The position numbers were made by a program, and so were the translations under genes. From Bugula neritina (taxonomy: Eukaryota > Animalia > Bryozoa): a stretch of 64,000 nucleotides of DNA. The notes below the pieces were generated by a model that saw only the letters and a list, made by a program, of their open reading frames with translations, made no database searches and had not been told where the DNA came from. This document shows, piece after piece, positions 1-50,509 of this stretch (position 1 is the first letter of the stretch; each line of letters opens with the position of its first letter). Location: positions 3,752,662 through 3,816,661 of the forward strand of contig OZ037770.1 of the NCBI GenBank assembly GCA_964035545.1, given 5' to 3'.

Positions 1-428
1 AACCAGCATATGACATCCCAAGTCTTTGTGTGTTTCTTTTTTCACCTCAGTCTTCACTGTAGACAGCATTTCCTGAAAATTTGAAAATGTGTATATAACC
101 AATGATATAAATTTACTTTATTTTAAGTTGTCAAATGACTGTGATTTATGCAATGCAAACAAAAACTTTTCACATGATTCTACCTATCAAAAGACCAAAC
201 AGTGAAAAAAACCAACAAGCTCCAGAAATTTTGATGCAGTTGTAGAGAAATTCTAAAAACAATAAAAAAAACATACCTAATATAATGGATGTAAGAAATA
301 ATTTCATTTTGTTAAAATATTTTACATGCTTCAAAAATATTTGATTAAAGGACAAAAAAACATTATACATGAAAATTTACTTGATGGTCAAATAGTGTTC
401 GCGCATTACCTTCACCATAACAACATAC

Positions 429-599
429 CTCTGCCTTTAGATCTGTGTGTGTCTCAACATCAAACTTGAGAGATTTCAACATGACAGACATGTTCTCAAC
501 ATCAGCATCTGAACCTTCCCTGCATAAGTCTGGTCTTTCAACAAAGTTCTTGTTGTTTATTATCAGAGCTTTTCCTCTCTCTCTGGTCATACTGAACAC
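429..599 (-). CDS. Caspase (peptidase C14A) large-subunit first exon, copy 1; next caspase exon starts at 72 and leaves the window
   Basis: VFSMTRERGKALIINNKNF...REGSDADVENM...LKFDVETHTDL matches the caspase p20 N-terminal consensus (RGxALIINN, RxGxxxD). 171 nt, phase 0-0, ccag/gtatgt boundaries. Confidence 0.88.
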
Positions 600-2553: not shown

Positions 2554-4559
2554 ATGGATGAATTAGAGCACTGGGTATCTCTTCATCGTTACACAATATC
2601 TTTGAAGATCCATGACACTTCTTGACATTTGGTGGCAGTTGGTTTTTTGGAGAACGGAGACACCATTTAGGATGCAAAAGCTTTTTAGGGCAAGAAACCC
2701 CCAGTAGCATGCAGTGAGCACAGATGCAGGCAGTAACTGGTCGACTAGCAGTCTAAGTTCCCATCACATGTCTGAGAATGTTGTTTGTGGCTGAAATGAG
2801 TTTTTCCCACATCCTTGGAATGTGAGGAGCATCGGATGACACATAGAGTAAGACTCTTCTAGAATCATAATCATGTGTCAGCTGTGTGTATGTCTCATCT
2901 TGAAAGACATTAGCTCCATTTCTCTTCACCTTCATTGTAGCAAACTCTTTAGAAAACAGTTCTAGCAAACCAACTGTCATTTGATGGTAGACATGCTGCG
3001 GTAAAGCCAGGCCCTTAAACTTTATCTCAGTGTGAAGGGCCATTTCTTTTGGTGAGGTGTATGACACACCTTGATGTTCCTTAGCAAACTGAGGGATGAT
3101 GAAGCACGGTTCATGGACATGATTTTCCAGAGGGCCATACAACAAACGGAATGTTTTAAGCAAGCAAAGAGCAGTTTCAACATCATGGGAGCTTTTGAAT
3201 AATGTTTCCTTTGCGATCAAATATGTTAGAAGAGATTTCATCATCAAGCCTGTTGTTTTGAAGCAATTCACAGACTCTTCAAACTCTTCTATTTCAATTC
3301 TCAACCCTTCTTCGGAAATGTATGATTGGAATTGATCAACTCTTTTCTGCCAGATTTCTGGGTCATGATGGTACAAGACACATAGTAGTTTAGTAACTTC
3401 TGTGATCTTGTGAAATATGTATGGTTTGAGTGCTTCAATATTTTTATACCAGAGAACTTTACCGCAGTCATGCATGTATGTGAGAATCGTATCTAGCTGA
3501 TGTGGCTCAACCTCAATACCTTCTTTTCTCAATTCTAGCAGAATAAATGAAAAAGAGCTGAAACCTCTGGTTGAAGACAAAACTTTCTTATTCACTTCTT
3601 CCCAGATCAGTGGCAAAAGCTTTACAAAGTGCTGACTACTTAGAAGGAGCGAGCTCTTTATCATTTCAAACTCAGCATACTTGTCATCCTTTCCAATCTC
3701 ATAAATATCTTCACTGGCAAAAACCTTTCCATTTGATGAATTGAAATGCTGTATTTTCGAGAAATCTCCATCTGAACTTTTCTCTTCATTGAGAACTTCT
3801 TTGCACAGCTGTTCAGATATGCTAAGAAAGCTTTCTTTAAGCTGTTGAAACTGTTCACTTTGGAACTTATCCTTGTGTGTGAAGACAAGCTTAGGTGGGC
3901 CAAGAGTAGGATGGGAGAGATAGAGGTGAGACATGAAGTCAAAGGCCAACTTTCTGACAGCTTCTTTCTTTGTAAACTCATTTGAAATCTGATCATACTG
4001 CTTCATGTTGACTACAATTACCGGTACACAATTCTGTCTCAGTGTTAAATGGTATGTGATATGATAGACCTCCTGGCCTCCCATATCTATGAGACGAAGA
4101 GTTGTACCATCCACTTCCACCTCTTCCACATTAAACACCTTCGTCATCTCATCATGCTCTGCATTCGAACTTCTGTCAGTCAGAACTCTCTTCCTGTCAG
4201 TGCTCTGTAATGTTCGAATTAGACTGGTTTTACCTGCCATGGTGTTCCCCAACACTGCTATTGTAGCAAATGGAAGATTTCTACCAGCACCTTTAGCAAA
4301 GTCTGTGTAGTATTGTTGCACGGCATCTAGTCCTCTTTCACAGACTTCCAGTGGAGGAGATGTAAGAGCATTGCAACTAAATATATCCAGTGTACGAAGA
4401 CGTGTTAGTTGTAGTATCTCAGGTTTCAAGGATGTCATGGAACTGTTTTTGGATATATTCAGTATGTGCAGATTACTCAATGCACACACTGGAGATGGTA
4501 GTTTGGTGAATTTATTGAAAGATATGTCTAGTGTCTGTAACTTTTGTAGATTTTGTATC
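2554..4559 (-). CDS. 2006-nt exon: 3 terminal LRRs + Roc GTPase + COR, copy 1 (interrupted by TAG at 2753-2755)
   Basis: P-loop GNTMAGKTS, DMGGQ (G3), THKD (G4), COR motif LTYMHDCGKVLWY. Same length as the copy 2 exon. Confidence 0.88.
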
Positions 4560-5084
4560 CTAATAATATATTATATTCATATTATCAGCACATACTAGAG
4601 GTAAGTGAGATCTAATTATAGCTGTCATAAATCTATAATGATAGTGAAGCAATTATACACAGAATGTAGACAAATGAAGTGGCAATGACTACAGTGACCT
4701 TATTGTATAAAGCTCTGTAAAGTAGTATGGGATATAATTGCAATTCTATAAGTTTCTTTTATTGATATTCTCACAATTATCAAGTAGTATTTTTATATTC
4801 CAAAGCATTTACAATACTACAACTACAATGATTTGGTAAAAGAGATTAAAGAAGTATTTTACTGTCACAATTCATAATGCTTCCATAAAAAATGTTGTTT
4901 TATATAACATATAGTTGAGTATAACTGCTTACACTGACATTTTATTAGATATGTGTAGTATATATTATAAATATGTACTATATATAATGCAGTAGGAGAG
5001 GTATGAACACCATAATGTAGTTTAACTGTGTTGACTATTCTGCTGAAATTGTTTTAAATGGTAAGTTTATTGTGACACACAAAC

Positions 5085-7254
5085 CTCTCAGGTAGAGTAG
5101 ATAATTCACATATCCCCATATCCAACTCTTTAAGTGATGTGAGTGATAACACAACTTCTGGTATTGTGTTGAGAGGATTACATCTTATGTCTAGTTTCTC
5201 TAACTGAGTCAGCTGACACAGACTGTAATATAAAGTGTATGATATATATGCAGTCTGCATTACTATATTATTTTATACTATATTCACATTTTGTTTTCAA
5301 CCAGGTAAAACTATATACAACTCAACTACCAAGAAACTTACTGTAGCATTGTACATGCAGAGCATGAGAAGTTAACAGTTTATTATAATAGTATACAAGT
5401 ATTCAATTATTATATATACTCAGTACATGAATACTAATCAACTATACAACTTCTTACTATTATTTACATTTTTATATCACAAGAATATATAATGGCATAC
5501 CTTAAAATTGCGTTATTTTCACAATATTACAGACCATATTTTATATAGAGTTCAAAAAAATTGCATTTCACATATTCTTCAATCATACAATAACATACCA
5601 TAATACTACTTGGTAAGCATATAAAGATGTCAAATATAGAATGTTTCAAACAATACAAAAATATTGTGACACAAACCTCTCAAGTAGAGTAGATAATTTA
5701 CATATCCCCATATCCAACTCTTTAAGTGATGTGAGTGATGACACAACTTCTGGTACTGTGTTGAGAGGATTACTTCCTATGTATAGTTTCTCTAACTGAG
5801 TCAGCTGACATAGGCTGTAATATAAAGTGTATGATATATGTAGTCCTCATTACTATAATATTTTATACTATATTCACATTTTGTTTTCAACCAGGTAAAA
5901 CTATATACAACTCAACTACCAAGCAACTTATTGTAGCATTGTACATGCAGAGCATGAGAAGTTAACAGTTTATTATAATAGTATACAAGTATTCAATTAT
6001 TATATATACTCAGTGTGTGAATACTAATCAACTATACAACTGCTTACTATTATTTACATTCTATAGCACAAGAATATATAATGGCATACTTTAAATTATG
6101 TTATTTTCACAATATTACAGACCATATTTCATATAGAATTCAAAAAAATTGCATTTCACTCAATAATTTATCAATTATATAATGACATGCCCTAATTATA
6201 CTTGGTAAGAAATTATTTTATGATTTCAAGTATTAAATGCTTCAAGCAACACAAAAACTGTGACACACAAACCTCTCAGGTAGAGTAGATAATTTACAGT
6301 TCCCTATATTCAACTCTTTAAGTGATGTGAGTGTTGACACAACTTCTGGTACTGTGTTGAGAGGATTCCCTCCTATGTCTAGTTTCTCTAACTGAGTCAG
6401 CTGACATAGACTATATAAACATACAGTGTTTGATATATTTAGTTTCACTTATACAGAGTACAATTACTAGAGTTACTATAGATACCACATGATGATGAGG
6501 AATAAAAAACTATACTATCAATTTATTCCTTCTTAACAGATCTATTTAAAGTACCATATACTATCATAACGCTTGACTACTAGGTAGAAGTATAACAGTT
6601 TATTATAATAGTACACAAGTATTTATTTTCAAACTCACTGAATACAATATAATAAACGAGAAATTAATGCTTACTATTAAATACATTTTTATAGCACAAC
6701 AATATATAATGGCATATAACTTTAAAATTGTGTTATTCCCACAATACTATAAACCAATGCATATATATGTGTGTAACTTTAAAACATGGCATTTCAAATT
6801 TTTCAATTATACAATGGCATACCATAATAACACTTAAGGTAAGCATTTGAAGTTGTCACATATCGATTGTTTAAAACAAAACAAAAATTCTTACTATTAT
6901 TTACATTTTTATATCACAAGAATATATATTGGCATACTTAAAATTATGTTATTTTCACAATATTACAGACATTATTTCATATAGAATTAATAAATTGCAT
7001 ATTTCACATATTTTTCAATTTTATAATGACATAACCTAATTATACTTGGTAAGGAACTATTTTACGATTTCAAGTATTAAATGTTTCAAACAATACAAAA
7101 ACTGGGACAAACAAACCTCTTAGGGAGAGTAGATAATTCACAGCTACTCATATACAACTCTTTAAGTGATGTGAGTGATGACACAACCTTTGGTACTATC
7201 TTGAGAAGATTCCAGCTTATGTCTAGTTTCTCTAACTGAGTCAGCTTACATAAA
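5085..7254 (-). CDS. Array of four 138-nt LRR exons (two 23-aa LRRs each), copy 1
   Basis: Exons 7254-7117, 6410-6273, 5814-5677 and 5222-5085 are each flanked by yag and gtttgt and are phase 2-2. Consensus LCQLTQLEKLxIxxNPLNTVPEVVSSLTSLKELxMxxCxLSTLPER. The exon at 5677-5814 is not in the ORF track and was read by hand. Confidence 0.9.
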
Positions 7255-8007
7255 CTGTAATATAAAGTGTGTAATATATGCATATATTACACACTTTATA
7301 TTACAGTCTAGACTACATGTAGTCTCTTGTATCATATATTGACATATTCTGTACTCAGCTATAATGTAAAATATGTAGCAAACAATTTTGTTGAGACAGG
7401 GTAAGCAGCAAAAAAATGCTATTATGCCATGTTATAGGTGTAATGGGTGCCCTGTGTATAATTGAGTGATTAGATGTATATGTATATAGACATCCTGTTA
7501 GTTTAATAGATAAGGGCTACTCTACAATGTAATGCTAATATATAGTATGATTTATAATAATAAATGGTTTAATTTATTATAGCTAGTCTGACACAAATTA
7601 GCATGTATTTAATATTCCAAAAATGTTTTATTTTTAAGTATATGGCTACATATATAATATGCTTATATATATTATGTATTGCAGATAAAAACCTTCTGTA
7701 TAACCCTACATGTATACATGTACTGCAATAATATTATGTTACTTCTGTAAATTCAACTACATAAAACATGTTTTAATTTATGATGGCATGTGTAACACTA
7801 CATACAGTTTTCCACTGTCTAATTTCTACAACTTGTTCAGCTGGTAGAGATACAATGTTATACATATTACTATAGCTTTATATAGTGAATGATTACATCA
7901 TGAGTAAGAATATACTTCAGCATTGACTCAGACACATCGTGCGTGACAATTATCACAACTAAACTCATTTAACATTTACACAGCTATCATAATAGACATG
8001 CACTCAC

Positions 8008-8230
8008 TTGTTTAGACTTGCTCTGTCAGTCAGGTTAGAAACACGTAGACGCAGGGCTTCACCAGCAATGTTGTTTGGAATATTCCCTTTCAGTTTAAGA
8101 TCTGTGATATGATAACTCCCAATTTCATGTTTCACCTTAGCAGTAGTATATGACTTGGTATTAGCATACTGTACACCTGACCAGCTTACAGGAGGCTGTC
8201 CAGAATGTCTGAACCAGATTTCCATCTTCT
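8008..8230 (-). CDS. N-terminal cap exon of the ROCO-caspase gene, copy 1
   Basis: ORF MEIWFRHSGQPP...ITDLKLKGN...SLN ends at AA|gtgagt, phase 2, matching the LRR exons. Acceptor ttacag joins in frame to ATG GCA ACA GAT G (9147-9135). Confidence 0.7.
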
Positions 8231-8304
8231 CTGTAACATCATACAGTGACAGTGTGATTATTACACAGTGCTAGCAGGTGATGTCTGTCATTCTGAAACC
8301 TGTC

Positions 8305-8422
<118 letters not shown>

Positions 8423-9339
8423 TCATTTGCTGTGTTAGTTACCATAGCTATATATTATAGACATGTTTGGCTGCTTTAGGTTTATGAAAGTAAAATCTGC
8501 AAATTTAAAATGATCTCTAATTTCCTGAAAACAACTGCTTTGTGTAGAATCTTTGAAATTATGCTGCTTTGGTTTCAATAAAGACTCTTTTAAATAATGT
8601 TGACATATATTCTACATTGCATAAATATATAAAGACATCTCAAAATCATATGAATTTAAAGCAGCCAAAAAACCACTGAATTATTATTTCACATCCACGC
8701 ATGCACAAAAAAGGTACAAATATCAACATCAAGTTAAAACTTTCTATATCCGACACTGCATACTTTCTACCCTATGAGTCACACAGCCAATGTTTACAGG
8801 ATGATTCTAGAAACACATGGACTAGTATATAGTTAGAACACTTTCTGATAGTGAGATATAAAGAACTGATTATTTGAATGTTACTCATATTTTTACTATG
8901 GAAACAAGCAAACCATAGAAAAGTTTTTAAAAACTCTTGTCTCAATAGGTAAAACTTTTACTAGTCTTGCTAAAATGAGATTCATACCCATGCAGAGCTG
9001 GTTTTGTTCATACCTATATTCAAATAAATGCTAAGTATTGTCTAAATACAAATAGTAACAACCAGTAGATAACTTTGGTTGAAAGCAAAACTTGTAACTT
9101 GGCTTTTCAACAAAAATTTATTAAAACAACTCACCATCTGTTGCCATGGTTACTAAAGTTTTTACTGCTGATTTATTTCAATTCTGTAAATCTGAAGGTT
9201 GGTAGCTCCACCTGTACAACAGGTATAAAATAAAAAGTATTATATAAATCATTGCTACATAGAATATACCAATGTACATGCCGATTTCTATAAGGAGTAG
9301 ATGTATAATCAGTCAAGAAAAATAAACTTAAGTAAACCA

Positions 9340-9600
9340 TAGGTATTTACTTATGTATGTATTTATGTATGTAGGTATTTAGGTATGTACGAAGTTAGGA
9401 ATGTAATACGTCTATAGGTATGTATGTATTTATGTATGTATGTATTCATGTATGTAGGTATTTAGGTGTATAGGTATTTAAGTATGCAGCTATGTGGGTA
9501 TTTAGGAATGTATGTATTTAGGTATATGTATATATATTTAGTTGTGTATGTATTTAGGTATGTAGGTATTTAGGTATGTAGGTATCTGGGTGGGTATGTA
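9340..9600. repeat. Degenerate TATGTA/GGTATTTA simple repeat (also ~50702-50962)
   Basis: Direct reading. Confidence 0.8.
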
Positions 9601-10120
9601 AGTCTGCAAACTCTTACTGACACAGTATACAGCTGCCTACTCGGTCACCTTAATTGTAGGAGGGAACTAGGTAACTCATCTGGCTGGACTGTGTGACAAC
9701 AGATATGACTTTGAATCAATACTTTGTATATCTCTGTCTCACTGCAATATGAATAATTTACAAATTGTACTGAAGTCTTAAAATGAGTGTAATAAAAATA
9801 TTCATACGCTGAATTATCATTTTATATCCATGCATGCACAAAAAAAGTACAAATATCAAAATCGAGTTAAATCTTTCTATATCTGACACTGCATACTTCC
9901 TACCCTATAATCACTTTATATAATATTATATGCTCAACTAACAATTGATGAAATTTGCAGACCTAAAAAATAATATATTGGCTGCGATATTATATGTATC
10001 TGCCAATATTATGTACTTTAAATAGTAAACTATTTAATAGTCAACAGTTAATTCTATACCTATTCTAATAATTTGGTCGATTTTGAACAATTAAGTAGAA
10101 AACATAACTCCTTGTATTAT

Positions 10121-15594: not shown

Positions 15595-15719
15595 TAAAAA
15601 AATAAAAGAGAAAAACAAAAAATATGCCCAATCTCGGACAAAGGCCATTTCTTTTTATAGCATGAAAAAATATAAGAGAAGAAAAAAAGAATATCATTGC
15701 GCTAGGTTAAATAATAGTA

Positions 15720-16155
15720 CAGTAATATACAGAAATATTGTAATAAGTTGTAATATACTGATCCACACTGTAATATACTGATACATGCTTTAATACACTG
15801 TAACATACTGTAACAGACTGTAATATGCTAAAAAATACTGCAATGCAACATAATACACTGCAATATACGACAATATAATGTAGTACACTGCAACAAACTG
15901 TCAGACAATGTAATATCTTGCTTAATTCTCTGTAAGAAACTGTAAGACACGTCAGTACAATGTAATAAACTGTAATATTATATAGTGTAATACATTATAA
16001 TAAACTGTAATAAACTGTAATAAACTGTAATAAACTGTAATAAACTGTAATAAACTATAATAAACTGTAATAAACAGTAATATACTGAAATATACTGAAA
16101 TATACACTAATACATTGTTATACACTGCAATACACTGTAATACACTGTAATACAT
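15720..16155. repeat. Degenerate 10-bp tandem repeat (TAAACTGTAA/TACACTGTAA); also ~57095-57515
   Basis: Direct reading. Confidence 0.85.
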
Positions 16156-29601: not shown

Positions 29602-29820
29602 ATGTCACTAGTTTACGTTGTGATGTCACTAGTTTATGCTAACATGTCACTAGTTTATGTTGTGATGTCACCAGTTTATGTGGTGATGTCACTAGTTTAT
29701 GTGGTGATGTCACTAGTGTATGTTGTGATACTAGTTCATGTTGTAATGTCACTAGTCTATGTTATCATGTCACTAGTCAATGTGATGATGTCACTAGTGT
29801 ATATATAATGAAGTCACTTG
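29602..29820. repeat. 21-bp tandem repeat (~10 copies, ATGTCACTAGTTTATGTTGTG) just upstream of the last TMTC3 acceptor
   Basis: Direct reading; explains spurious ORF 29602-29808. Confidence 0.9.
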
Positions 29821-35327: not shown

Positions 35328-37685
35328 TTAGGGGTTGTCCTTTCTGTTAAACCCATCGAAGCCAGGAAAAAGGTAAAGTCTTTTACCATAAGGAAGAGTA
35401 TTCCAGATTACAATCAAATTTCCGTTTCTCTCTGAATCTTCATCTGCATAGAGTTTCTTCACTAGTTTAGTCTGCACCTGTAGAGTAAGTAATGACTAGT
35501 AAGATTGTTTATCAATTCACTGTTATAGCTGAGCCAAGATGTAAATATTGTATCCTACTTGTAACAAATATGAACAGCAAACACTTTGGGAATTGTCTAC
35601 CACCGTCTTATCATATAGCATATAGCAGTACAGTGGCACTAGTTATTAGCAAACTACAAGAACGTATATTGACAAGGAAAAGAAACTATAGAGCTAAAGA
35701 AATTGTAAGAACAAAAGCTACTAGTTAAACTAGAGAAAACTAGGAACGACGTTCTGTTACTAAAAATAGTAGATATCTTTTTTCAAAGGATAAAAGAGTT
35801 CCAACATAAAAATGGACAAAATGATATCATGAGAAATTATATTTTAATTTCTTAAATAAAATTGAAATATCAAAAAAGTTTGTGATTTTTAAACTCACAT
35901 GCTGAAAGAGAGTGTAGAGATCACGGTGACAGGCATGTTTGTAGATTGAAGATACTAGAGCTCTAATCATGGGAGATCCATACTCAGGATGTCTCTTTGA
36001 TGCTAAAATAAAATTGAATGCAGTCAAAATACAGGTCAAGAAAGACCAACTCTAACACGTTTTAGTTTTAGTGGAACATAATTTTAATCTCAAGTTTCTA
36101 GAAAATACTATCCTCATTTTGATGCTGCAATAAAAGTATATGTAGCTCAAATTCTGGTGTAGTCAGAGCAAGTTTAAATTTTTTTTATTTCTGTTTGGTT
36201 TTTAGCATTAGCAAGCAATATGGCTAGTACACGGAAAACCTTACATAACATGGTCAAATTAACTTTGAGAAACAAACTTTTAGATCAACAAAAACTGTAG
36301 CTGCACACCTAACAAACTAATGAATAACTTTCTCCTGCTATACTTACAGCAAACGTTACTCTTTAGAACAAGAAGATCATCTATATCCCGTACAGTTCTA
36401 CACTCTTCTATTCTAGGTTCTGATGGTGAGACTGGTCTAATAGGTCTTATTATGCTGGGTGATTCAGGATATACAATGTCATCATCATCAGGTTCAGGGT
36501 GTGTAGAAGAGACAGCTTCAGTTTCCTCTTCTTGAGCTGCTGCAAGACTTGATCTCTCTGGATTCGCCTCAATGTCTGCTGCAAGGCAAACATTACAAAT
36601 ATCTTAACTTTGTGAGCTGAACAATCTCAAGACACCCAGTTGCTCAAGCATCAAAACTGTGAATCAAGTTAAACTGCATATTGATTAGATGACTGGTCTC
36701 TGACAGAAAGTCTTCACTATTTCAACCATTGAACTAAACGTTCCAGTTTATACTACAAAACAACTACCTCCACTGCTGGCTTCTAGGAAGACAACTTTAG
36801 GTTTTCTCTTCATTCCATCGAAATACAAAGGAGTGAGTAAATCACACAGGTTAGTGAGGTTGACCTTCTTAAGGTCAGTTCCATAGATGCAGTTATCTTC
36901 CCCACCATGAGTCATGACAACCAGCATATGACATCCCAAGTCTTTGTGTATTTCTTTTTTCACCCCAGTCTTCACTGTAGACAGCATTTCCTGAAAGTTT
37001 GAAAATGTGTATATAACCAATGATATAAATTCACTTCACTTTAAGTTGTCAAATGACTGCTATTATAGATTTATGCAGTGCAAACAAAAACTTGTCTCAT
37101 CTATAACCTATCAAAAGACCCAACAGTGAAAAAAACTAACAAGCTCCAGAAAATTTAATGCAGCTTTAGAAAAATTTCAAAAACAATAACCAACATAAAA
37201 AATTCACTTTATTTTAAGTTGTCAAATGACTGTGATTCATGCAATGCAAACAAAACCTTTTCACATGAATCTACCTATCGAAAAACCAAACAGTGAAAAA
37301 AAAACCAACAAGCTCTAGAAATTTTGATGCAGTTGTAGAGAAATTCTAAGAACAATAAAAAAAACATAATTTAATGGATGTAAAAAATAGTTTTATTTTG
37401 TTAAAATATTTTACATGCTTCAAAAATATTTGATTAAAGGACAAAAAACATTATATATGAAAATTTACTTGATGGTCAAATAGTGTTCGCATTACCTTCA
37501 CCATAACAACATACCTCTGCTGTCAGGTCTGTGTGTGTCTCAACATCAAATTTGAGAGATTTCAACATGAGAGACATATTCTCAACATCAGCATCTGAAC
37601 CTTCCCTGCATAAGTCTGGTCTTTCAACAAAGTTCTTGTTGTTTATTATCAGAGCTTTCCCTCTCTCTCTGGTCATACTGAACGC
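35328..37685 (-). CDS. Caspase-fold domain (5 exons: p20, p20, linker, p10, p10) of copy 2
   Basis: RGKALIINN; REGSDAD; VVMTHGG (catalytic His); IYGTD; KPKVVFLEASSG (Cys replaced); DDLLVLKS; SKRHPEYGSPMIRAL; NTLPYGKRLYLFPG. Confidence 0.88.
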
Positions 37686-40600
37686 CTGGATATTAATATA
37701 GTTAGAGTATCACATACAGCAGTGACACACATGAGCCAAAGTTGAGAGTACATAGATAGTGGCATGCTTTCAAAATAAATAGTAATAGTTAATTTAGCTC
37801 TCAAGATGCCATATATGGTGCCTCAAATTTCTAGGTCTGACAAAAAGCAGTAAAGCATTCTCTCAATTGCAAAATCAATTTTACATCTTTATGCTAAAAT
37901 TTAAATTTGTTACATTTTAGTTATAACATGAACTAAGCAAACTCTTGTTTAAGACACCAGTTGTCATTTTTCCAACAAAACATGTAAATAGTCCATTAAG
38001 TATGCTGGTTATTGTTACAAAAGTCATTCAGGATATTATTGAGGTTACAAAATAAGAGTTATTACACTGCATGACTATATGTTGTTGAAAATAGCTTATA
38101 TTTAACTTTAAGTTTTTACAAACCAAGCATGTATTTGCAAGGCTGTAGAATTGAATAAGGACAATTTACGGCTCTAATAAAATTTGTTTGCATATTACAC
38201 TTTACTGGCTCAAAATAGACCAATATCTATTTTATGTAAACAAAGTTTCTAAAACCAAACCATCTGCAAAACATTCACTTAGCTTACAGATACAATCGAT
38301 TGCAGTGGAAAATTATAGTAAAATCAACTTTAAGCTTAAAGGTCACAAAAGAAATCATACTATAAATTGTTTGCCCCACTAAGATTACTCTATGACCATA
38401 TATATATGGAGTTACTGGGAAATCTCAACCCTTCCTCCTAAGCAATTCCTCTGATCTCTTTCTACAATTCCTTCAGCTTTCAGGTTCTCTTAGCCTTTGA
38501 CCTCCTTAGGAGTACTGCTATACTGTTACTATTACTTTTTAATAAAGGTCAAAAGAGCCCACAAAAAATACATTCCCTCTTACTGGAATTCAAATAGTAG
38601 AAGTCTAGCTTTCAGGCGTGCTAGCAAGATAAACATTACACTACAAGGACTAATGAGTAATCTCCACACAACAAATGCCTTCTAATCATGACAACCAATT
38701 GAACCCAAACTAATAAAAACAGAGCAGAAACTATGGCTAAACCAAAACCTACAAGTATAGTAAAATGATAGAATTTGAAAATGTGCATGCATTTAGATCA
38801 ATTGATTTTCAGATCCAATTGAACAACTGCACATGACAATCTAGTAAAAGGAGTTTTTAGAAACCGAAATACTCTACTAGGTGGAGAAAGGAGAGCTGCT
38901 ATTACTTGTGTTCATCAACTAATAAATTCACCTTTTCAGTGTTTGAAAAGAGTTGTTTTATCCTTGAGTTGGTTGTTGGCTTTAGTTCAAGTTGTATTAA
39001 CTTCATGTCTTCCTCATTCTCTTCATCAGGGTACAGATTGTCATCATCTTCAGAGAGATCACTCAGATCATCATCATTTAACTCATCTACAGTCACATCA
39101 TTAGACAGATTATTGTCAACATTTGAAACCATAAACTACATACCTCGCTTAGACAGGAGAAGAAGCAATTAATTTTAAAAGTCACAATCAGATATGATTT
39201 GTAGGGAAATGTAGGGCAAAATTTGCAAAGCCTATAATTTTACCAATACTGCTGGTATAAAAAATGAGCTCTGTCTAAAAAATTCACCATTTGATTTGCT
39301 CTGCTCTCTTCGAACTTTGAGCTCAGAAAGAAAGTTCTTCAATTGATTTGTTTCTGTTTCAGAAAAAGTCTCACCTGAACAATACAGACAGAATTAGTAA
39401 CATCAAAACTAGATGAGAGGCATTAGAAGAATATGAGACATAATCAAAAGCTCATGTATCAAGTTTATATTTTATAAGTCAGCCTAGAAGTTCATTAGAA
39501 TAGCTGTGTAATTTGCTAATGTCCATCTAGCTGCTATTAAAATTCATCAGTGCCTGGAAAAATAGTGGATACGTTTTGATAGTGCAACAAACTATTTAAA
39601 AACATTTGGGCAAAGCAATCAAAAGTGAATCATAGTTGTAAACATACATGGATGAATTAGAGCACTGGGTATCTCTTCATCGTTACACAATATCTTTGAA
39701 GATCCATGACACTTCTTGACATTTGGTGGCAGTTGGTTTTTTAGAGAACGGAAACACCATTTAGGATGCAAAAGCTTTTTAGGGATAGAAACCCCCAGTA
39801 GCATGCAGTGACCACAGATGCAGGCAGTAACTGGTCGACTAGCGGTCCAAGTTACCATGACATGTCTGAGAATGTTGTTTGTGGCTGAAATGAGTTTTTC
39901 CCACATCCTGGAAATGTGAGGACCATCGGATGAAACATAGAGTAAAACTCTTCTAGATTCATAGTCATGTGTCAGCTGCGTGTATGTCTCATCTTGATAG
40001 ACAGTTGCTCCATTTCTCTTCACCTTCATTGTAGCAAACTCTTTAGAAAACAGTTCTAGCAAACCAACTGTCATTTGGTGGTAGACATGCAGCGGTAAAG
40101 CTAGGCCCTTAAACTTTATCTCAGTGTGAAGGACCATATCCTTTGGTGAGGTGTATGACACACCGTGATGTTCCTTAGCGAACTGAGGGATGATGAAGTA
40201 CGGTTCATGGACATCATTTTCCAGAGGGCCAAATAACAAACGGAATGTTCTAAGCAAGCAAATAGCAGTTTCAACATCATGGGAGCTTTTGAATAATGTT
40301 TCCTTTGCGATCAAATATGTTAGAAGAGATTTCATCATCAAGCCTGTTGTTTTGAAGCAATTCACAGACTCTTTAAACTCTTCTGTTTCAATTCTCAACC
40401 CTTCTTCGGAAATGTATGATTGGAAGTGATCAACTCTTTTCTGCCAGATCTCTGGGTCATGATGATACAAGACACATAGTAGTTTGGTAACTTCTGTGAT
40501 CTTGTGAAATATGTATGGTTTGAGTGCATCGATATTTTTATACCAGAGAACTTTACCGCAGTCGTGCATGTATGTGAGAATGGTATCTAGCTGATGTGGC

Positions 40601-43600
40601 TCTACTTCAATGCCTTCTTTTGTCAATTCCAACAGAATCAACCAGAAAGAGCTAAATGCTCCGGTCAAAGACAAAACTTTCTCATTCACTTCTTCCCAGA
40701 TCAATGGCAAAAGCTTAACAAAGTGCTGACTACTTAGAAGAAGCGAGCTCTTTATCATTTCAAACTCAGCATACTGGTCATCCTTTCCAATCTCATAAAC
40801 ATCTCCACTGGCAAAAACCTTTCCATTTGATGAATTGAAATGCTGTATTTTCGAGAAATTTTCATCTGAACTTTTCTCTTCATTGAGAACTTCTTTGCAA
40901 AGCTGTTCAGATATGCTAAGAAAGCTTTCTTTAAGCTGTTGAAACTGTTCACTCTGAAACTTATCCTTGTGTGTGAAGACAAGCTTAGGTGGGCCAAGAG
41001 ACGGATGGGCTAGATAGAGGTGAGACATGAAGTCAAAGGCCAACTTTCTGACAGCCTCTTTCTTTGTAAACTCATTTGAAATCTGGTCATACTGCTCCAT
41101 GTTGACTACAATTACCGGTACACAATTCTGTCTCAGTGTTAAATGGTATGTGATATGGTAGACCTCCTGGCCTCCCATATCTATGAGACGAAGAGTTGTA
41201 TCATCCACCTCCACCTCTTCTACATTGAACACTTTTGTGGTCTCATCATACTCTGCATTCGAACTTCTGTCAGTCAGAACTCTCTTCCTGTCAGTGCTTT
41301 GCAATGTTCGAATTAGACTGGTTTTACCTGCCATGGTGTTCCCCAACACTGCTACTGTAGCAAATGGCAGATTTCTACCAGCACCCTTAGCCAAATCTGT
41401 GTAGTAGTGTCGCACAGCATCTAATCCTCTCCTACAGACTTCTAGTGGAGGAGATGTAAGAGCATTGCAACCATGTATATGCAGTGTATGGAGACGTGTT
41501 AGCTGTAGCATCTCAGGGTTCAAAGATGTCATGGACTCATTGTACAATATATCAAGTGTTTGCAGATTACTCAATGCACACACTGAAGATGGTAGACTGG
41601 TGAACTTATTGTTTGATATGTCTAGTGTCTGCAACTTTTGTAGATTCTGTATCCTAATAATATATTATATATTCACATTATCAGCACATGCTAGAGGTAA
41701 GTGAGATATAATTATAGCTGTCATAAATCTACAATGATAGTAAAACTATTATACACAGAATGTAGATGTATACGACGTGGCAATGGCTAAAGTGACCTTA
41801 TTATATAAAACCCTTTAAAGTAGTATTAGTCTAGAAGTAACCGCCCGAAAAGTGCTCAAAAAATTGGGTTAATACACTTTACTAGGTGGCCACTCAAAAA
41901 AAGTTGTTTCTAGATCAATATTCTGTGTTGATTCTGAATCTACAAACTCTAGAATTCTATCTCTACCCAAACTCAAGTTATTGCAAAAAACAAATCGGCA
42001 TTTTGGATGGGTGATAGAAAAAAATGTGGATTGTGCAAAATAGTATCCAATTTTATCAAGCTATCTTGAAGAAAAAATATTTGTTGAAGTATCAAAAATA
42101 ACTGCCTCTTACTTAGAATTCTATGCTAATACTAAATTTAAAGACTGTAAGAGGCTATCTCAAATTATAACCAAGTTGTTTATATAAACATATATAGTCT
42201 AGAAGTAACCTCCCAAAAAGTGCTCAAAAAGTTGGCTTATTACACTTTACTAAATGGCCACTCAAAAAAAGTTGTTTTTAGATCAAAATTTTGTGCTGAT
42301 TCTGAATCTACAATTTTTAGAATTCTATCTCTACCCAAACTCTAGTTATTGCAAAAAACAAATCGACGTTTTAGATGGGTGATAAAAAGAAATGTAGATT
42401 GTGCAAAATAGTATCCAATTTTATCAAGCTATCTTGAAGAAAAAATATTTGCTGAAATATAAAAAATAATTGCCTCTTACTTAGAATTCTATGCTGATAT
42501 TGAATTTAAAAACTGCAAGACGCTATCTCAAATTAAAAATCAAGTTGTTTATATAAACACATGTGTTTGTTATGAATCGACATATTGCATGCGGCATAAG
42601 CATGCAGAATAATTGTATGACCAAGCTATTTATACAAAAATAAAAGCAAAGTCATGCTGATGTGTGAAAAAACTATATTTATAAAATCATTGTACAAAAT
42701 AAATGTTGAAATGAATAAATATTGAAATATTTTGAGCTCAGCCCAAGTGAACCATTTGCTAGTCTGTCGGTAGCCGTTAAACGTCTGCAAAAATCAACAA
42801 GATTCTGTAAAATTATTTAGAGGAACAGAAGCATGAAAGATTATCAAAATCAAATTGGTTGCAAGCAGCAAAATATATAACAAATGTCTAAAAATAGTGC
42901 TTTATTATAAAAAAGTATTCTCGCCATCATTGTCATTGCCATCAGTCTCATCAGCTCCTTCCCCAATATAGAGCTTCTTTTCAGACAATCCTTACATTGA
43001 CAAACATCAGTGCATGCACTGCATTTGAGATTTCTGACATCCACATCTTGATATGTTGCAGCTGGTCTTACAGGAGCAGTTTAAACTTTGCAATATACAT
43101 GTTCAGGTGCGAAAGCTTGAATCATCTACTTTATATTTATGTTGCCATGATTCTCAACAATCTTTTCATAATGTTCTGGGGTGGTGCATCAATATAAGCT
43201 GTTGTCACTCTTCTTCAAATAGCTGCCTGATAATTTGCTCTTTTTACATGCAAATTTAATTCATCTTTTGTTGGAGGCAAACTCTATTAAGTTATTTTAG
43301 ATGGTGAACGAAATACAGTGTATCATACATTATCTATATATTATATGGATTTCCTGCTCCATAAAGCTTATAGACAAATTGTTCTATTTCAGCCGCTGTA
43401 ATGGCTTACAGCTTAAAATACTTCCCAAGGTGTTCAAAGTTTCCCATACATTATGGATATTTTCTCAAAAAAGAGTAGGCTGTGCGATATCCTTTTTCAT
43501 AAAAAGCACTATAGTCAAATAAAAACCTGTTGAAGCATGAAATCTACTAAGTGCTGCACACAACTACGGTTTGGATTTACTTGCTGCAATGTTGACATCC

Positions 43601-46600
43601 AAATATCTAATATGATTATGGTTTCTTCCCAGATAGACGCTATTTTTATTTTGTTACCATATATATTAATATTACCTATATAACTGAGGAATTGATTGCT
43701 AATATGCTAATAGCTATATGTAGTAATACATTAATAATAGACACTATCTTTAATGAATACTTATTAGCAAAATATATTTTCAAACAACAGACAAGATGTA
43801 TAAAATAATATACAAAATTAATAAGTTAATGCAAATCAAAAGAATTTATTTATGTGTTAAATAACAAGCAATTAATCCAAGTTTATTTAAATATGCATAT
43901 GTTTCAATAATATTAAAATAAGTTGCACATGAAAATACATTTTACCAAAATAAATAACTAGCGTCTAAGTAGAAAATTTAGTCTAGCCTCTTTCTGGCAT
44001 GACACCATGATTACCACACCCGTGAAAAAATATAATTGGTAAGAAGGTGATGTTTTGCAAATAGCGAGACTTAGGATGAAAAGTTGAGATTTGATTATTA
44101 TACGTGAAATTATGATGTTTATAAGATATTTTGCATGTAAAAAAGTTTGTGTATCTGCTCCCTCATGATCTAATTGTAAGCATTTGAGTTGTGCTTTCTT
44201 AGGAATTCTACCATGTTTGGTAAAATTGTAGCTGAAAGCAGTTATTTTTGGTATGCATCAACTATAATAACAATATTGTTCTCTAATATATAATATTTTT
44301 ACTCCATGTTTCACACAAAAATGAACCAGTCTCAAACTCAGCTTATTTTAATTTGGGGATAAGAAATTATTATTTTTGTAACAAATGGCACACATGAAAA
44401 AAGTACATGCCTATGATCTTTGAATGAGGCAGCCCAAGATCATTTTTCTAATGCATGGGTGGTCTAAATATAACCATATAATATATTAAAAATTATAGGA
44501 AAGCTTTAGGGTATTTCTTCTGTAACTATAACTGAGATAAATTGGCTCTAGAGTCATTATATCAAGATAGTATAAAAATATGCATTCTAACCAATAGCAT
44601 TGTTTTAAAAACCAAATTGCTTATGTATAATATATAGTTCAGCTTAAATTTATTGGCAAAGCTCAATTATACATTTTTAAAATATTATCTTCCTGAGTCC
44701 AGATCAACCAGCTCATGCTTCTCATTACTTTTTTGTAAAAGTAGTTATTATAATAAAAATGGTGAAGAAAATCATTATCAGACACAACTTTACTTATAAT
44801 TCGCCTTTTTTATAGCCGATCAATAATAATGTTTGCCTTATAACTAATAAACCCATTCCTTTGCTTGTTTTCGTCCATATAATCCACTTATTTCAGATTT
44901 TTTCACAAGAAAATCACTAGAAATAAACTCAGAGAAGTGAAAAACACATCTATGATTAACTGCAAAAGTTTTTGCTTGTATATAATATAATAAACTAGCT
45001 TCAATAATTTCAAGATAATAAATTAAATATTATTTAATGGATTTGGACAAAGTTGTGGGGAAACAACTCCTGTAACATTTTAAAGAGTTTTGTGACTAAC
45101 CGGGTGGATAGAAAAATTTAAAGTTTTTATAGAAGAAAAGTGAAAAAAGTATCTATAACTATCAGCAAATTTATTTTGCTTATATAAAATAAAATAGCTT
45201 GAATAATTCCGAAATATTTAGCCAATTCACAAAAACATTAGGAGAAAACAACTCCTGATTAATTTTAAAAGTTTAAAGCGTTTTTGTGGCCAACTGGGTG
45301 CACAGAACAGTCTGGAGTTTTCACAGATTAATTAGGACCCTTCAAACTTTGTATTTCTAAAGAAATTGCGTGGCCACCCCTCAAAGTGTAATGAGTGAAA
45401 GATAATTGGAGGTTACTTCTAGACTATATGGGATATAATTGTAATTCTACAATTTTCATTTATTGATATTCTCACAATTTTCAAGTGTTATTTTTGATAT
45501 TTCAAATCATTTACAACACTACAATTACAATGAATTGGTAAAAGATATTAAAAAAGTAATTTAAGTGTCACAATTCATAATGCTTCCGTAGACAATGTTG
45601 TTTTATATAACATGTAGTTGAGTATAACTGCTTAGACTGATATTTTATTAGATATGTGTGGTATATATTATAAATATGTACTATATATAATACAGTTATA
45701 ATCAAACTATATAGAGGCAAAGTTATTATGCATGAGTCTGCATGAAGTATTACAGAAAGTATGCCAGAGAAAAACACAATACTCAGCATTACACTTTAAC
45801 AAACAATGCTAAGAAATACACATTAATAGTTGTTGAACAGAAAGTTCAATTTTTATCAACTTTGCTATATGATGAACTACAAGTTCAGGGTACTATTGCA
45901 CTGTCTTGCAAGGATATTACGTGTGCATTCTTTAAAGGACAGTTTTGTAAATTATAAGGGAAAGCGAATTATTGAACATATTATAGATATGAACAACTTG
46001 TTATGTATATACCATTTCTAGCTTTACAGAGGAGAGGTATGGACACTATAATGTAGTTTAATTGTGTTGACTATTTTGCTAAAAATTGTTTTAAATAGTA
46101 ACTCTATTGTGACACACAAACCTCTCAGGTGGAGTAGATAATTCACACTGCATCATATTCAACTCTTTAAGTGATGTGAGTGATGACACAACTTCTGGTA
46201 CTGTGTTGAGAGGATTGTCTTTTATGTATAGTTTTTCTAACTGAGTTAGCTGACATAGACTATAAACATACAGTGTTTGATATATTTAGTTTCGCCTATT
46301 CAGGATACAATTACTAGAGTTACTATAACTACCACATGATTATGAGGGATAAAAAACTATACTATCAATTTATTCCTTCATAATAGATCTATATAATGTA
46401 ACATACTATCATAACGCTTGACTACTAGGTAAAAGTATAACAGTTTATTATAATAGTACACAAGTATTCATTTTTAAACTCAGTGAATACTACGTAATAA
46501 ACTAGAAATTATTGCTTACTATTAATTACATTTTTATAGCACAACAATATATAATAGCATAAAACCTTAAAATTGCATTATTCCCAAATATTTTAAACCA

Positions 46601-49600
46601 TTGCATATATGTGTGTGTAACTTCAAAACATTGCACATCATATTTTTCAATTATACAATGGCATATACCATAATAACACTTGGTAAGCATATATAAAGTT
46701 GTCAAATAATGAATGTTTTAAACAATACAAAATCTGTGACAAACAAACCTCTTAGGTAGAGTAGATAATTCACAGCCTCCCAAATCCAACACTTTAAGTG
46801 ATGTGAATGATGACACAACTTCTGGTACTGTGTTGAGAAGATTATCTCCTATGTATAGTATCTCTAACTGAGTCAGCTGGCACAGACTGTAATATATAGT
46901 ATATGATATACATGTAGTCTGCATTACTATAATATTCTATACTATATTCACATTTTGTTTTCAACCAGATAAAACTATATACAACTCAACTACCAAGCAA
47001 CTTATTGTAGCATTGTACATGCAGAGCATGAGAAGTTAACAGTTTATTATAATAGTATACAAGTATTCAATTATTATATATACTCAGTGTGTGAATACTA
47101 ATCAACTATACAACTGCTTACTATTATTTACATTTTTATAGCACAAGAATATATTATAATGATATACCTCAAATTATGTTATTTTCACAATATTACAGAC
47201 CATATTTTATATAGAATTAATAAATTGCATTTCACATATTTTTCAATCATATAATGACATAACCTAATTGTACTTGGTGAGGAACTATTTTCTGATTTCA
47301 AGTATTAAATGTTTCAAACAATACAAAAACTGTGACAAACAAACCTCTTAGGGAGAGTAGATAATTCACAGCTACTCATATTCAACTCTTTAAGTGATGT
47401 GAGTGATGACACAACTTCTGGTACTGTGTTGAGAGGATTGTTTCCTATGTATAGTTTCTCTAACTGAGTCAGCTGACACAGACTATAAACATACAGTGTT
47501 TGATATATTTAGTTACACATATTATGCAGAGTACAATTACTAGAGTTACTATAACTAGCACATGATTATGAAGGATAAAAAACTATACTATCAATTTATT
47601 TCTTCATAACAGATCTATATAATGTAACATACTACCATAACGCTTGACTACTAGGTAAAAATATAACAGTTTATTATAATAGTACACAAGTATTTATTTT
47701 TAAACTCAGTGAATACTATAACTAATAAACTAGAAATTATTGCTTACTATTTATTACATTTTCATAGCACAGCAATATATAATGGCATATAACCTTAAAA
47801 TTGTGTTATTCCCACAACATTATAAACTATTGCATATATTATTTGTGTAACTTCAATACATTGCATTTCATATTTTTCAATTATATAATAATTGACATAC
47901 CGTAATAACACTTGGTATAAGCATATAAAGATGTCAATTATTGAAGGTTTCAAACAATAAAAAGAATTAGCAATACAAACCTCTCAGGTAGAGTAGATAA
48001 TTTACAGCCCCCCATTTGCAACTCTTTAAGTAATGTGAATGATGACACAACTTCTGGCACTGTGTTGAGAGGATTATATGCTATGCCTAGCGTCTCTAAC
48101 TGAGTCAGCTGACATAGACTGTAATATAAAGTGTATGATATATATGTAGTCCTCATTACTATAATATTTTATACTATATTCACATTTTGTTTTCAACCAG
48201 GTAAAACTATATACAACTTAGCTACCAAGCATCTTATTGCAGCATTGTACATGCAGAGCATGAGAAGTTAACAGTTTATTATAATAGTATACAAGTATTC
48301 AATTATTATATATACTCAGTGTGTGAATACTAATCAACTCTACAACTGCTTACTATTATTTACATTTTTATAGCACAACAATATATAATGACATACCTTA
48401 AATTACGTTATTTTCACAATATTACAGACCATATTTCATATAGAATTAATAAATTGCATTTCACATGTTTTTCAATCATATAATGACATAACCTAATTAT
48501 ACTTGGTAGGAAACTATTTCATGATTTCAAGTATTAAATGTTTCAAACAATACAAAAACTGTGACAAACAAACCTCTTAGGGAGAGTAGATAATTCACAG
48601 CTACTCATATACAACTCTTTAAGTGATGTGAGTGATGACACAACCTTTGGTACTATCTTGAGAGGATTCCAGCTTATGTCTAGTTTCTCTAACTTAGTCA
48701 GCTTACATAAACTGTAATATAAAGTGTGTAATATATGCATATATTACACACTTTATATTACAGTCTAGACTACATGTAGTCTCTTGTATCATATATTGAC
48801 ATATTCTGTACTCAGCTATAATGTAAAATATGTAGCAAACAATTTTGTTGAGACAGGGTAAGCAGCAAAAAAATGCTATTATGCCATGTTATAGGTGTAA
48901 TGGGTGCCCTGTGTATAATTGAGTGATTAGATGTATATGTATATAGACATCCTGTTTGTTTAATAGATAAGGGCTACTCTACAATGTAATGCTAATATAT
49001 AGTATGATTTATAATAATAAATGGTATAATTTGTTATAGCTAATCTGACACAAATTAGCATGTATTTAATACTCTGAAAATATTTTATTTTTAAGTATAT
49101 GGCTACATATAATATGCTTATATATATTATGTATTGCAAACAAAAACCTTCTGTATAATCCTGCATGTATACATGTACTGCAATAATATTATGTTACTTC
49201 TGTATTCAACTACATAAAACATGTTTTAATTTATGATAAGATGTGTAACACTACAGACAGTTTCCCACTGTCTAGTTTCTACAACTCGTTCAGCTGGTAG
49301 AGATACAATGTTATACATATTACTATAGCTTTATATAGTGCATGATTACATCATGAGTAAGAATAGACTTCAGCATTGACTCAGACACATACATCGTGGG
49401 TGATAATTATCACAACTAAACTCATTTAACATTTACACAGCTATCATAATAGATACTTACTTGTCTAGACTTGCTCTGTCAGTCAGGCCAGAAACACATA
49501 GACACAGGGCTTTACCAGCAACCTCTCCAATGTTGTTTGGAATATTCCCTATCAGTCTAAGATCTGTGATATGATAACTCCCAATTTCATGTTTCACCTC

Positions 49601-50509
49601 AGCAGCAGTATATGATTTGGTATTAGCATACATAGCATACTGTACATCCCACCAGTCTACAGGAGGCTGACCAGAATGTCTGAACCAGATTCTCATATTC
49701 TCTGTAACATCATACAGTGACAGTGTGATTATTACACTGTGCTAGCAGGTGATGTCTGTCATTCTGAAACCTGTTACATACATCTATTATTTGCTGTGTG
49801 TAAGACACTACAGCTATATATAGACATGCCTGGCTACTTTAGGTTCATGAAAGTAAAATCTGCAAATTTAAAATGATCTCTAATTCCCTGAAAACAACTG
49901 CTCTGTGTAAAATCTTTGAAATTATGCTGCTTCGGTTTCAATAAAGACCCTTTTAAATAATGTTGACATATATTATACATTGTATAAATATATAAAGACA
50001 TTTTAAAATCGATGAGTTTAAAGCAGACAAAAACACGCTGAATTATCATTTCACATCCAAGCATGCACAAAAAAGGTACAAATAGCAACATCAAGTTAAA
50101 AGTTTCTATATCCGACACTGCATACTTTCTACCCCATGAGTCACACAGCCAATGTTTACAGGATGATTCTAGAAACACATGGACTAGTATATAGTTAGAA
50201 CACTTTCTGATAGTGAGATATATAGAACTGATTATTTGAATGTTACTCATATTTTTACTATGGAAACAAGCAAACCATAGAAAAGTTTTTGAAAACTCTT
50301 GTCTCAATAGGTAAAACTTTTACTAGTCTTGCTAAAATGAGATTCATACCCATGCAGAGCTGGTTTTGTTCATACCTATATTCAAATAAATGCTAAGTAT
50401 TGTCTAAATACAAATAGTAACAACCAGTAGATAACTTTGGTTGAAAGCAAAACTTGTAACTTGGCTTTTCAACAAAAATTTATTAAAACAACTCACCATC
50501 TGTTGCCAT
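35328..50509 (-). CDS. LRR-Roc-COR-(pseudo)caspase fusion protein, copy 2, apparently intact (15 coding exons, 1356 aa)
   Basis: Exons 50509-50497, 49701-49461, 48711-48574, 48118-47981, 47482-47345, 46886-46749, 46259-46122, 41653-39648, 39374-39288, 39086-38932, 37685-37515, 36990-36768, 36578-36348, 36002-35899, 35477-35328 (TAA). Lengths sum to 4071 nt, every junction is GT-AG and phase-compatible, and I found no internal stop. Confidence 0.85.
39648..41653 (-). CDS. 2006-nt exon: 3 terminal LRRs + Roc GTPase + COR, copy 2
   Basis: ORF 39619-41634 with GNTMAGKTS, DMGGQ, THKD, LTYMHDCGKVLWY and a C-terminal CICGHC. Confidence 0.9.
41827..45426 (-). mobile_element. Degenerate Academ-like DNA transposon (3600 bp) in an intron of copy 2 only
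   Basis: Perfect 16-bp TIRs TAGTCTAGAAGTAACC / GGTTACTTCTAGACTA. 3-bp TSD TAT (41824-41826, 45427-45429); the empty site in copy 1 near 4722-4730 reads GTAGTATGG. Minus-strand remnants ALSRFHASTG, LPPTKDELNLHVKRANYQAAI and NCSCKTSCNISRCGCQK..CTDVCQCKDC resemble the Academ transposase C-terminus. Confidence 0.8.
46122..48711 (-). CDS. Array of five 138-nt LRR exons, copy 2
   Basis: Exons 48711-48574, 48118-47981, 47482-47345, 46886-46749 and 46259-46122 are all phase 2-2 and open. Two of them are missing from the ORF track and were read by hand. Confidence 0.9.
49461..49701 (-). CDS. N-terminal cap exon of the ROCO-caspase gene, copy 2
   Basis: MRIWFRHSGQPP...SLD; donor AA|gtaagt; homologous to 8008-8230. 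Confidence 0.7.

Follow-up and report, generated by a model that had tools for sequence, protein, structure and literature searches.

Two adjoining LRR-Roc-COR genes carry arrays of cassette exons

The stretch of DNA analysed here, which we call the window, comprises 64,000 nucleotides (nt) of AT-rich eukaryotic DNA from the bryozoan Bugula neritina (C6:3752662-3816661 of a 216,009,554-base assembly). Its minus strand carries two adjoining paralogous LRR-Roc-COR(-caspase) genes, copy 1 and copy 2, which encode leucine-rich repeats (LRRs) followed by a Roc GTPase and a COR domain. In both copies a first coding exon is followed by a series of 138-nt exons, each encoding two 23-residue LRRs, and then by a large exon, after which copy 2 continues with caspase exons. 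We report that variation among the 138-nt exons, hereafter termed cassettes, is concentrated at a few codons of each repeat, and that diversifying selection has probably acted on six to seven defined positions per cassette.

Copy 1 contains four cassettes and copy 2 contains five. In copy 1 these are cassette A (7117..7254, with the tetrads DISW in the first repeat and YMSS in the second), cassette B (6273..6410, DIGG and NIGN), cassette C (5677..5814, YIGS and DMGI) and cassette D (5085..5222, DIRC and DMGI). In copy 2, cassette A (48574..48711, DISW and YMSS), whose flanks are 97% identical to those of cassette A in copy 1, is joined by cassettes B (47981..48118, GIAY and QMGG), C (47345..47482, YIGN and NMSS), D (46749..46886, YIGD and DLGG) and E (46122..46259, YIKD and NMMQ). 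All lie on the minus strand, measure 138 nt and are bounded by AG and GT. Translation of all nine exons returned the cassettes and every tetrad of both repeats exactly as a preliminary description of this DNA had named them. The LxxLxLxxN/CxL core recurs with a period of 23 in 18 of 18 repeats, and all nine cassettes consist of 1 nt, 45 codons and 2 nt, a symmetric phase. Given this phase and the AG and GT borders, cassettes can be joined in frame in any number.

In three RNA-like sequencing runs, read depth was found on exons and was zero in introns, whereas a DNA run covered both. RNA-like contigs were joined at exact exon ends (4558/4559, 5222, 5676/5677, 6273, 6410 and 8008), which include both ends of cassette B and one end each of cassettes C (5676/5677) and D (5222) of copy 1. 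Some of these joints run from cassette to cassette ('go back 138'). Cassette A of copy 1 is covered by exon-only RNA depth, with no joint among those listed. Because the reads were placed at 90% identity, transcripts of paralogues may map at copy 1, and the joints thus confirm exon ends rather than which gene is expressed. We conclude that cassette exons of this family are transcribed and spliced in frame, at the ends of three copy-1 cassettes. Certain joints (e.g. 4558 to 5676 and 5222 to 8008) have the form expected of cassette skipping, for which we make no claim, paralogues being indistinguishable; since all cassettes begin and end with near-identical stretches of 25-30 nt and the contigs are short, such joints cannot show alternative splicing.

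Variation is concentrated at seven codons per cassette

The size of the family was estimated with a 20-nt scaffold pattern, which at up to two mismatches matched 342 places in the 216-Mb assembly; the reversed control pattern matched none. Matches formed clusters on C6 (2.5-6.3 Mb) and C1 (32.8-33.6 Mb), and a few lay elsewhere. From 50 loci we collected 159 ungapped cassettes, of which 156 are intact and 143 are unique sequences; they come from 22 arrays holding 1 to 17 cassettes each, some of them cut by the ends of the loci. The nine exons of the window are interchangeable two-repeat LRR cassettes of a family with at least 342 members.

Positions are numbered below as L1 x2 x3 L4 x5 L6 x7 x8 N9 x10 L11, and codon k of any cassette occupies H-3k..H-3k+2, where H is the highest coordinate of the exon. 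Among the 156 intact cassettes, residue entropy in the first repeat reached 2.5 bits at codon 11 (x5), 2.4 bits at codon 13 (x7) and 3.2 bits at codon 14 (x8), and in the second repeat 1.9 bits at codon 34 (x5), 2.9 bits at codon 36 (x7), 2.6 bits at codon 37 (x8) and 2.1 bits at codon 39 (x10). In cassette D of copy 1 these codons lie at 5189-5191, 5183-5185, 5180-5182, 5120-5122, 5114-5116, 5111-5113 and 5105-5107 on the minus strand. All seven exceed 1.5 bits, the threshold for highly variable plant nucleotide-binding LRR receptors (NLRs) (PMC8226289), and entropy at every other codon is at most 1.13 bits. Within the window, nonsynonymous diversity (piN) among the nine cassettes is 0.485 at the six positions named in the preliminary description (x5, x7 and x8 of both repeats), versus 0.069 at the other 39 codons. 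This concentration of variation is far beyond chance and holds genome-wide.

Two points of the preliminary description need adjustment. It had called the scaffold nearly invariant, which is fair though not literally so, as 24 of the 45 codons vary in at least one of the nine cassettes. It had also said that the x positions of the motif vary; this is true of x5, x7 and x8 in both repeats, but x2 and x3 are conserved, and position 10 of the second repeat, beyond those first named, is hypervariable as well. In the 156 cassettes x2-x3 is fixed as E-K in the first repeat (codons 8-9) and as K-E in the second (codons 31-32), a charge pattern that could be a charge ladder belonging to the scaffold. 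In the three LRRs of the large exon, unlike in the cassettes, x2 and x3 do vary.

Variants at the hypervariable codons are numerous, with 78 different triplets in the first repeat, 96 quadruplets in the second and 130 combinations of the two among 154 cassettes. The residue repertoire there is made up of G, D, N, K, E, R, W, S and Y, with L, F, V, I, T and P being almost absent, in a genome that is AT-rich. At codons 14 and 36 tryptophan, which has only one codon, occurs more often than any other residue, in about a quarter of the cassettes.

The hypervariable codons show an excess of replacement changes

Selection was assessed on independent DNA by a pair test, in which cassettes were paired only by the similarity of 200 nt of flanking intron, each cassette was used once, the cassettes of the window were excluded and differences were scored at the six positions fixed beforehand. 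In the 26 pairs with intron divergence of at most 3%, the proportion of nonsynonymous differences (pN) at these positions was 0.091, compared to a proportion of synonymous differences (pS) of 0.019 and an intron divergence of 0.009. The resulting ratios are 4.9 for pN/pS (bootstrap 95% confidence interval (CI) 2.6-10.6) and 10.2 for pN/intron (4.9-18.9). With 55 pairs they are 4.1 (3.3-5.1) and 5.3 (4.4-6.5), respectively.

A fixed-sites codon model (IQ-TREE) gave a similar picture. For the seven hypervariable codons the nonsynonymous to synonymous rate ratio, omega, was 4.28 versus 0.72 elsewhere, and a comparison with omega = 1 gave twice the log-likelihood difference (2dlnL) = 66 and p = 4e-16. 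The six named positions alone gave omega 4.31 (2dlnL = 63, p = 2e-15), and the ten x positions of the textbook motif gave omega 2.68 (p = 8e-10); outside the hypervariable sites omega was 0.7-0.8. Tested site by site, codons 11, 13, 14, 36, 37 and 39 passed Bonferroni correction and codon 34 was nominally significant (p = 0.014). The same test placed x2 and x3 at 0.3-0.7 of pS, and these two positions are under purifying selection. In the pool of cassettes, piN was 0.42 at the seven hypervariable codons versus a synonymous diversity (piS) of 0.11 at the others, and piS was 0.00-0.05 at codons 11, 12, 15, 34, 35 and 38, all situated in the variable clusters or between them. A dN/dS above 1 at the named sites, as expected in the preliminary description, was thus obtained both in the held-out pairs, where replacement changes reach 4.1-4.9 times pS with confidence intervals that exclude 1, and in the codon model.

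Recent duplicates were informative on the tempo of these changes. In the 2243-nt ungapped alignment of two recent array duplicates, mismatches amounted to 0.89% in introns, 2.1% at other exon sites and 22.6% in hypervariable codons. Nine pairs showed zero mismatch in about 3.6 kb of flanking intron; their exons differ at nine sites, all nine differences change an amino acid, and seven of the nine fall in hypervariable codons (p = 5e-6).

Possible donors of the variants were also sought. For six variant tracts of 24-30 nt, a pattern search of the whole assembly, which is blind to conversion tracts shorter than 24 nt and to donors on the other haplotype, found no copy besides the tract itself. 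Within the cassette sample, one of 14 variants has a shared tract, common to two other cassettes. The two cassettes with variant tracts at C6:4548669-4548698 and 4859248-4859277 have 200-nt flanks that are identical on both sides and are set apart by six replacement changes within 22 nt, which fall in codons 11, 13, 14 and 18; neither version occurs elsewhere in the assembly. A four-gamete test between the two repeats of a cassette, restricted to common haplotypes and of low power, was positive in 0 of 450 quartets, giving no sign of recombination between the halves. The variants may have arisen by point substitution or through very short conversion tracts.

Predicted position of the variable residues on the LRR solenoid

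The cassette residues were placed on the LRR fold by motif register and by analogy, using the register itself, a model of the adjoining LRRs and SHOC2. In the AlphaFold2 model (pLDDT 86.5) the three LRRs of the large exon, which adjoin the cassettes, have their strands at motif positions 3-5. SHOC2, which ranked behind two Leptospira LRR proteins, offers the nearest LRR type among solved eukaryotic structures (E 3e-14, ungapped, 40 residues). Its repeats are of the same 23-residue type; their LxxLxLxxN segment forms the concave surface, where MRAS and PP1C contact the variable residues immediately flanking the conserved Asn (bioRxiv 10.1101/2022.05.10.491335).

By this analogy, x5 would be the outward-facing last residue of the strand, and x7, x8 and x10 would sit on the rim of the concave face, in the turn. 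Conservation in the cassettes extends to the buried L/I/N/C positions and over the whole convex half (positions 11-23). The preliminary description had put the variable residues on the concave beta-strand; by register they are indeed neither convex nor buried, but only x5 would fall in the strand proper, the others occupying the turn that follows. Its further proposal, diversifying selection on a recognition surface, is supported with these refinements, as we found neither a dN/dS of 1 or less at the named sites nor a convex or buried position of the variable residues.

The large exon encodes a ROCO core and is followed by caspase exons in copy 2

The large exon of copy 1 (2753..4559, minus strand) encodes three LRRs, Roc and COR, and its upstream end coincides with the RNA joint 4558/4559; that of copy 2 (39649..41653, minus strand) encodes in addition a Cys-rich tail, and its 3' end is inferred from a GTATGT donor. 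Roc was identified with Pfam PF08477 at 32.3 bits in copy 2 and 32.1 bits in copy 1 (cut-off 27), and the translation contains the P-loop GNTMAGKT and a DxxG motif (DMGG). COR is weak by sequence (COR-A, 19.2 bits, cut-off 35.3) but clear by fold, the model aligning over 590-750 columns to LRRK1, LRRK2, the LRR-Roc-COR of CtRoco and the RocCOR tandem 3dpu. The best Foldseek matches of the copy 2 large-exon model were LRRK1, LRRK2 and the C. tepidum Roco (E 7e-24 to 1e-20). No NACHT or NB-ARC was found, Pfam giving Roc, MMR_HSR1 and Arf-type GTPase only and the fold search giving Roco proteins. In the large exon Roc is followed directly by COR, which defines it as ROCO.

The claim that the large exon repeats the pattern of the cassettes was borne out. 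In its LRRs the two copies differ at 11 of 18 x codons versus 4 of 54 other codons, with pN at the x codons of 0.37 versus 0.164 for pS over the whole exon (ratio 2.2, p = 0.003; Roc-COR 0.21). In 20 related metagenome proteins the x positions, x2 and x3 included, are the most variable of the LRR segment, and some COR positions are equally variable. Metagenome contigs from independent samples (JGI samples 3300002729 and 3300003318; L051-L056) show the same order of Roc and then caspase with another subfamily of LRR exons, whose copies again differ mainly at x5, x7 and x8 (LIELHMQDC, LKELDMGNC, LRELDMSHC). Where this subfamily was not seen, the contigs reach too short a distance upstream, and the set yielded no orthologous pairs of cassettes.

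The caspase-domain exons of copy 2 lie at 35827..37676 on the minus strand, in open reading frame (ORF) pieces at 37476-37676, 36748-37020 and 35827-36039 that match Pfam PF00656 (E 1.3e-10, 5.3e-8 and 1.8e-3). The active-site pentapeptide, in the piece at 36748-37020, reads EASSG and thus lacks the catalytic Cys. The large exon of copy 1 ends at an in-frame TAG (2753-2755); the codon at this place in copy 2 is TGG (HVMGT* versus HVMVTW...). Copy 1 still aligns in frame beyond the TAG, and most of its caspase exons would lie outside the window, downstream of this premature stop.

At the other end of the genes, the first coding exon of copy 1 (8008..8225, minus strand; MEIWFRH...) encodes an N-terminal cap, has RNA-like coverage with joints at 8008 and ends in phase with the cassettes; that of copy 2 (49461..49696, minus strand; MRIWFRH...) is recognized by its translation and a GTAAGT donor. 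Inspection by eye, with no predictor applied, revealed no obvious signal peptide in either.

The tandem duplication that relates the two copies (window 1-17500 versus 37400-58700) is a mosaic. Its 5' part has a spacing of about 41,360 nt and an identity of 96-99%; the large exon has a spacing of about 37,090 nt and a pS of 0.16. The extra DNA of copy 2 includes a 368-nt direct repeat (41827-42494), and GC-rich blocks at 10-16 kb and 52-56 kb were duplicated together with the genes. Between the gene copies lie a 38-nt satellite (20812-21637; 21.7 copies, 97% identity) and a 21-nt array (29602-29802; 9.7 copies). A plus-strand ORF of 214 amino acids at 60501-61145 gave a weak retrotransposon gag match (PF03732, 17.9 bits, under the cut-off).

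Proposed function and alternative explanations

We propose that the nine cassettes form the sensor arm of intracellular LRR-Roc-COR(-caspase) genes. Purifying selection would fix the scaffold of the solenoid, that is, the buried L/I/N/C residues, the convex half, x2 and x3, and positive diversifying selection would change x5, x7 and x8 in each repeat as well as x10 in the second. In a stack of 8 to 30 or more repeats, the variable positions would line up as a continuous stripe on the concave face. Such a stripe may bind diverse ligands, most likely pathogen or symbiont molecules, and ligand binding might then switch Roc-COR and bring caspase domains into proximity, as NLR inflammasomes do. A more far-reaching proposal is that the genes represent a new animal class, a one-piece intracellular immune receptor in which Roc-COR replaces NACHT and a hypervariable LRR face is coupled to a caspase, with a repertoire perhaps enlarged by combinatorial cassette splicing or by non-templated, codon-focused diversification. 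We put this forward as a conjecture with a rather low chance of being correct; a hint of non-templated diversification comes from intron-identical duplicates, because these carry up to six replacements in 22 nt without a donor.

Several observations weigh against diversifying selection as the explanation of the cassette variation. The analysed cassettes are 156 of at least 342 and come nearly all from one chromosome region, and the tree-based codon test takes no account of recombination. In pairs with at most two exon differences there was no significant excess, the rate being 0.014 at hypervariable codons versus 0.0047 at silent sites (p = 0.14), with an intron divergence of 0.012 in the same pairs; this test is underpowered. 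The selection signal consequently depends on exons with clustered changes, and these clusters could in part be conversion tracts. In the recent array duplicates the exon sites other than hypervariable ones diverge 2.4 times as much as the introns, and some exons differ by 10-14 nt, silent changes included, within introns that are about 99% identical. Finally, copy 1, the site of the finding, is either a young pseudogene or a gene cut short ahead of the Cys-rich tail and the caspase exons.

Among the alternatives, one accepts the selection and changes only its cause, which would be allorecognition, symbiont management or endogenous partners specific to each paralogue. Bryozoans are colonial, with fusion and rejection behaviour (PMC8195603), and this host has a heritable symbiont; the records behind related metagenome contigs and behind two RNA-like runs carry names that suggest symbiont samples. 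Most animal allorecognition receptors carry a signal peptide, whereas none was obvious by eye in the first coding exons described above, and they are encoded at few highly polymorphic loci rather than by hundreds of germline cassettes in many genes. The present results do not discriminate among these ligand classes, and we consider a ligand of this kind unlikely, though a possibility to be kept in mind.

The serious rival to selection is exon-limited gene conversion, or swapping of cassettes, by which old differences would be imported into young copies and the ratios inflated, silent sites of the scaffold being constrained or homogenised. The exons with 10-14 differences in near-identical introns, the raised divergence of other exon sites and the tract common to two other cassettes all speak for it. 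Against it, the six tested tracts have no second copy in the assembly, and silent sites are not consistently slower than introns. Moreover, piN at the hypervariable codons of the pool exceeds piS at silent sites only a few bases distant by a factor of 3.8, which conversion cannot produce because it only moves existing variation. The enrichment of changes at hypervariable over other sites in recent duplicates (10.6-fold) exceeds that of the pool (about 5.5), a difference of marginal significance. Conversion without selection is, in our assessment, improbable.

A third view would explain the pattern by relaxed constraint only, exposed positions drifting neutrally on a conserved scaffold. LRR alignments in general show variable x positions, and in the pairs with at most two exon differences the hypervariable rate is close to that of introns. 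Neutral drift, however, cannot yield rates 4-10 fold above those of silent sites and introns, the choice of residues is strongly non-neutral (Trp abundant; aliphatics, Thr and Pro nearly absent), and x2 and x3, equally exposed by register, are conserved. The intactness of 156 of the 159 cassettes counts against both drift and hypermutation. We regard relaxed constraint as very improbable. Scarcely credible, lastly, is a targeted mutation that raises the rate at these codons, in the germline or somatically and captured in the assembly: in one cassette pair, six substitutions fall within 22 nt, the 400 nt of flanking intron are identical and no donor copy was found, but silent third positions in and between the clusters barely vary, the changes include all base types with no common motif seen, and we know of no such mechanism in animals outside lymphocytes.

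Comparison with known systems

Highly variable plant NLRs, like the bryozoan genes, are intracellular, form clustered families and vary at concave x positions; entropy above 1.5 bits marks the concave-sheet x positions of their LxxLxLxx motif, in agreement with positive selection inferred by PAML, and aromatic residues occur there (Prigozhin and Krasileva 2021, PMC8226289). The plant proteins use an NB-ARC switch and a CC or TIR effector, whereas the bryozoan family has Roc-COR and a caspase, and variation in plants is found among the alleles of a clade rather than among paralogous cassettes of one genome.

In the variable lymphocyte receptors (VLRs) of lamprey and hagfish, LRR modules are supplied as cassettes and hypervariable concave residues bind antigen, according to the passage of PMC3341825 that cites this work. 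Unlike VLRs, the bryozoan arrays are complete in the germline, have canonical introns, are normally spliced and encode presumably cytosolic proteins. VLR germline genes are incomplete and are assembled somatically from flanking cassettes, and their products are extracellular, with Cys-capped ends.

Other proteins share only parts of this organization. In SHOC2 the ligand-contacting positions are the same as those that vary in the bryozoan cassettes, but SHOC2 is a single conserved scaffold protein that lacks Roc-COR and caspase and is not a diversified family. LRRK1, LRRK2, MFHAS1 and the C. tepidum Roco have the LRR-Roc-COR core in common with the window genes (Foldseek alignments over 660-750 columns); they are single- or few-copy proteins with conserved LRRs and a kinase or no effector. 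To our knowledge, neither hypervariable LRR cassettes nor fusion to a caspase has been described for them. The literature searched yielded no account of a Roco-caspase family in metazoans, nor of LRR receptor diversification in bryozoans.

The closest precedent is provided by the LRR-ROCO genes of brown algae. In Ectocarpus and Saccharina these encode 23-residue LRRs on symmetric-phase exons that are duplicated and shuffled, have PAML-selected sites on the concave face at positions 14, 16, 18 and 19 (i, i+2, i+4, i+5), and have been proposed as immune receptors (Zambounis et al. 2012, PMC3341825; Teng et al. 2024, PMC11378527). The algal exons are of 72 nt and phase 2 with one LRR each, whereas those of the bryozoan are of 138 nt with two LRRs and begin with one base of a split codon. 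Algal LRR-ROCO proteins lack the effector domain that the bryozoan genes have in their caspase. By their spacing the algal selected sites would fit x3, x5, x7 and x8, whereas the bryozoan cassettes conserve x3 and show selection at x10 of the second repeat. Common descent of the stramenopile and bryozoan LRR-ROCO expansions is unlikely; their resemblance is one of mechanism, not of membership.

Hypervariable concave LRR faces mark direct binders of fast-changing ligands, as in highly variable plant NLRs and lamprey VLRs. Here the signature stands on a Roco scaffold with a caspase, in an animal phylum with almost no described immune genetics, and suggests that Roc-COR can act as the switch of a receptor that links recognition to cell death. 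It supplies a map of likely binding residues, seven per cassette, and may bear on the debated link of LRRK2 or MFHAS1 to immunity. As a second independent case beside the brown algae, it makes convergence on a diversified LRR-ROCO sensor testable.

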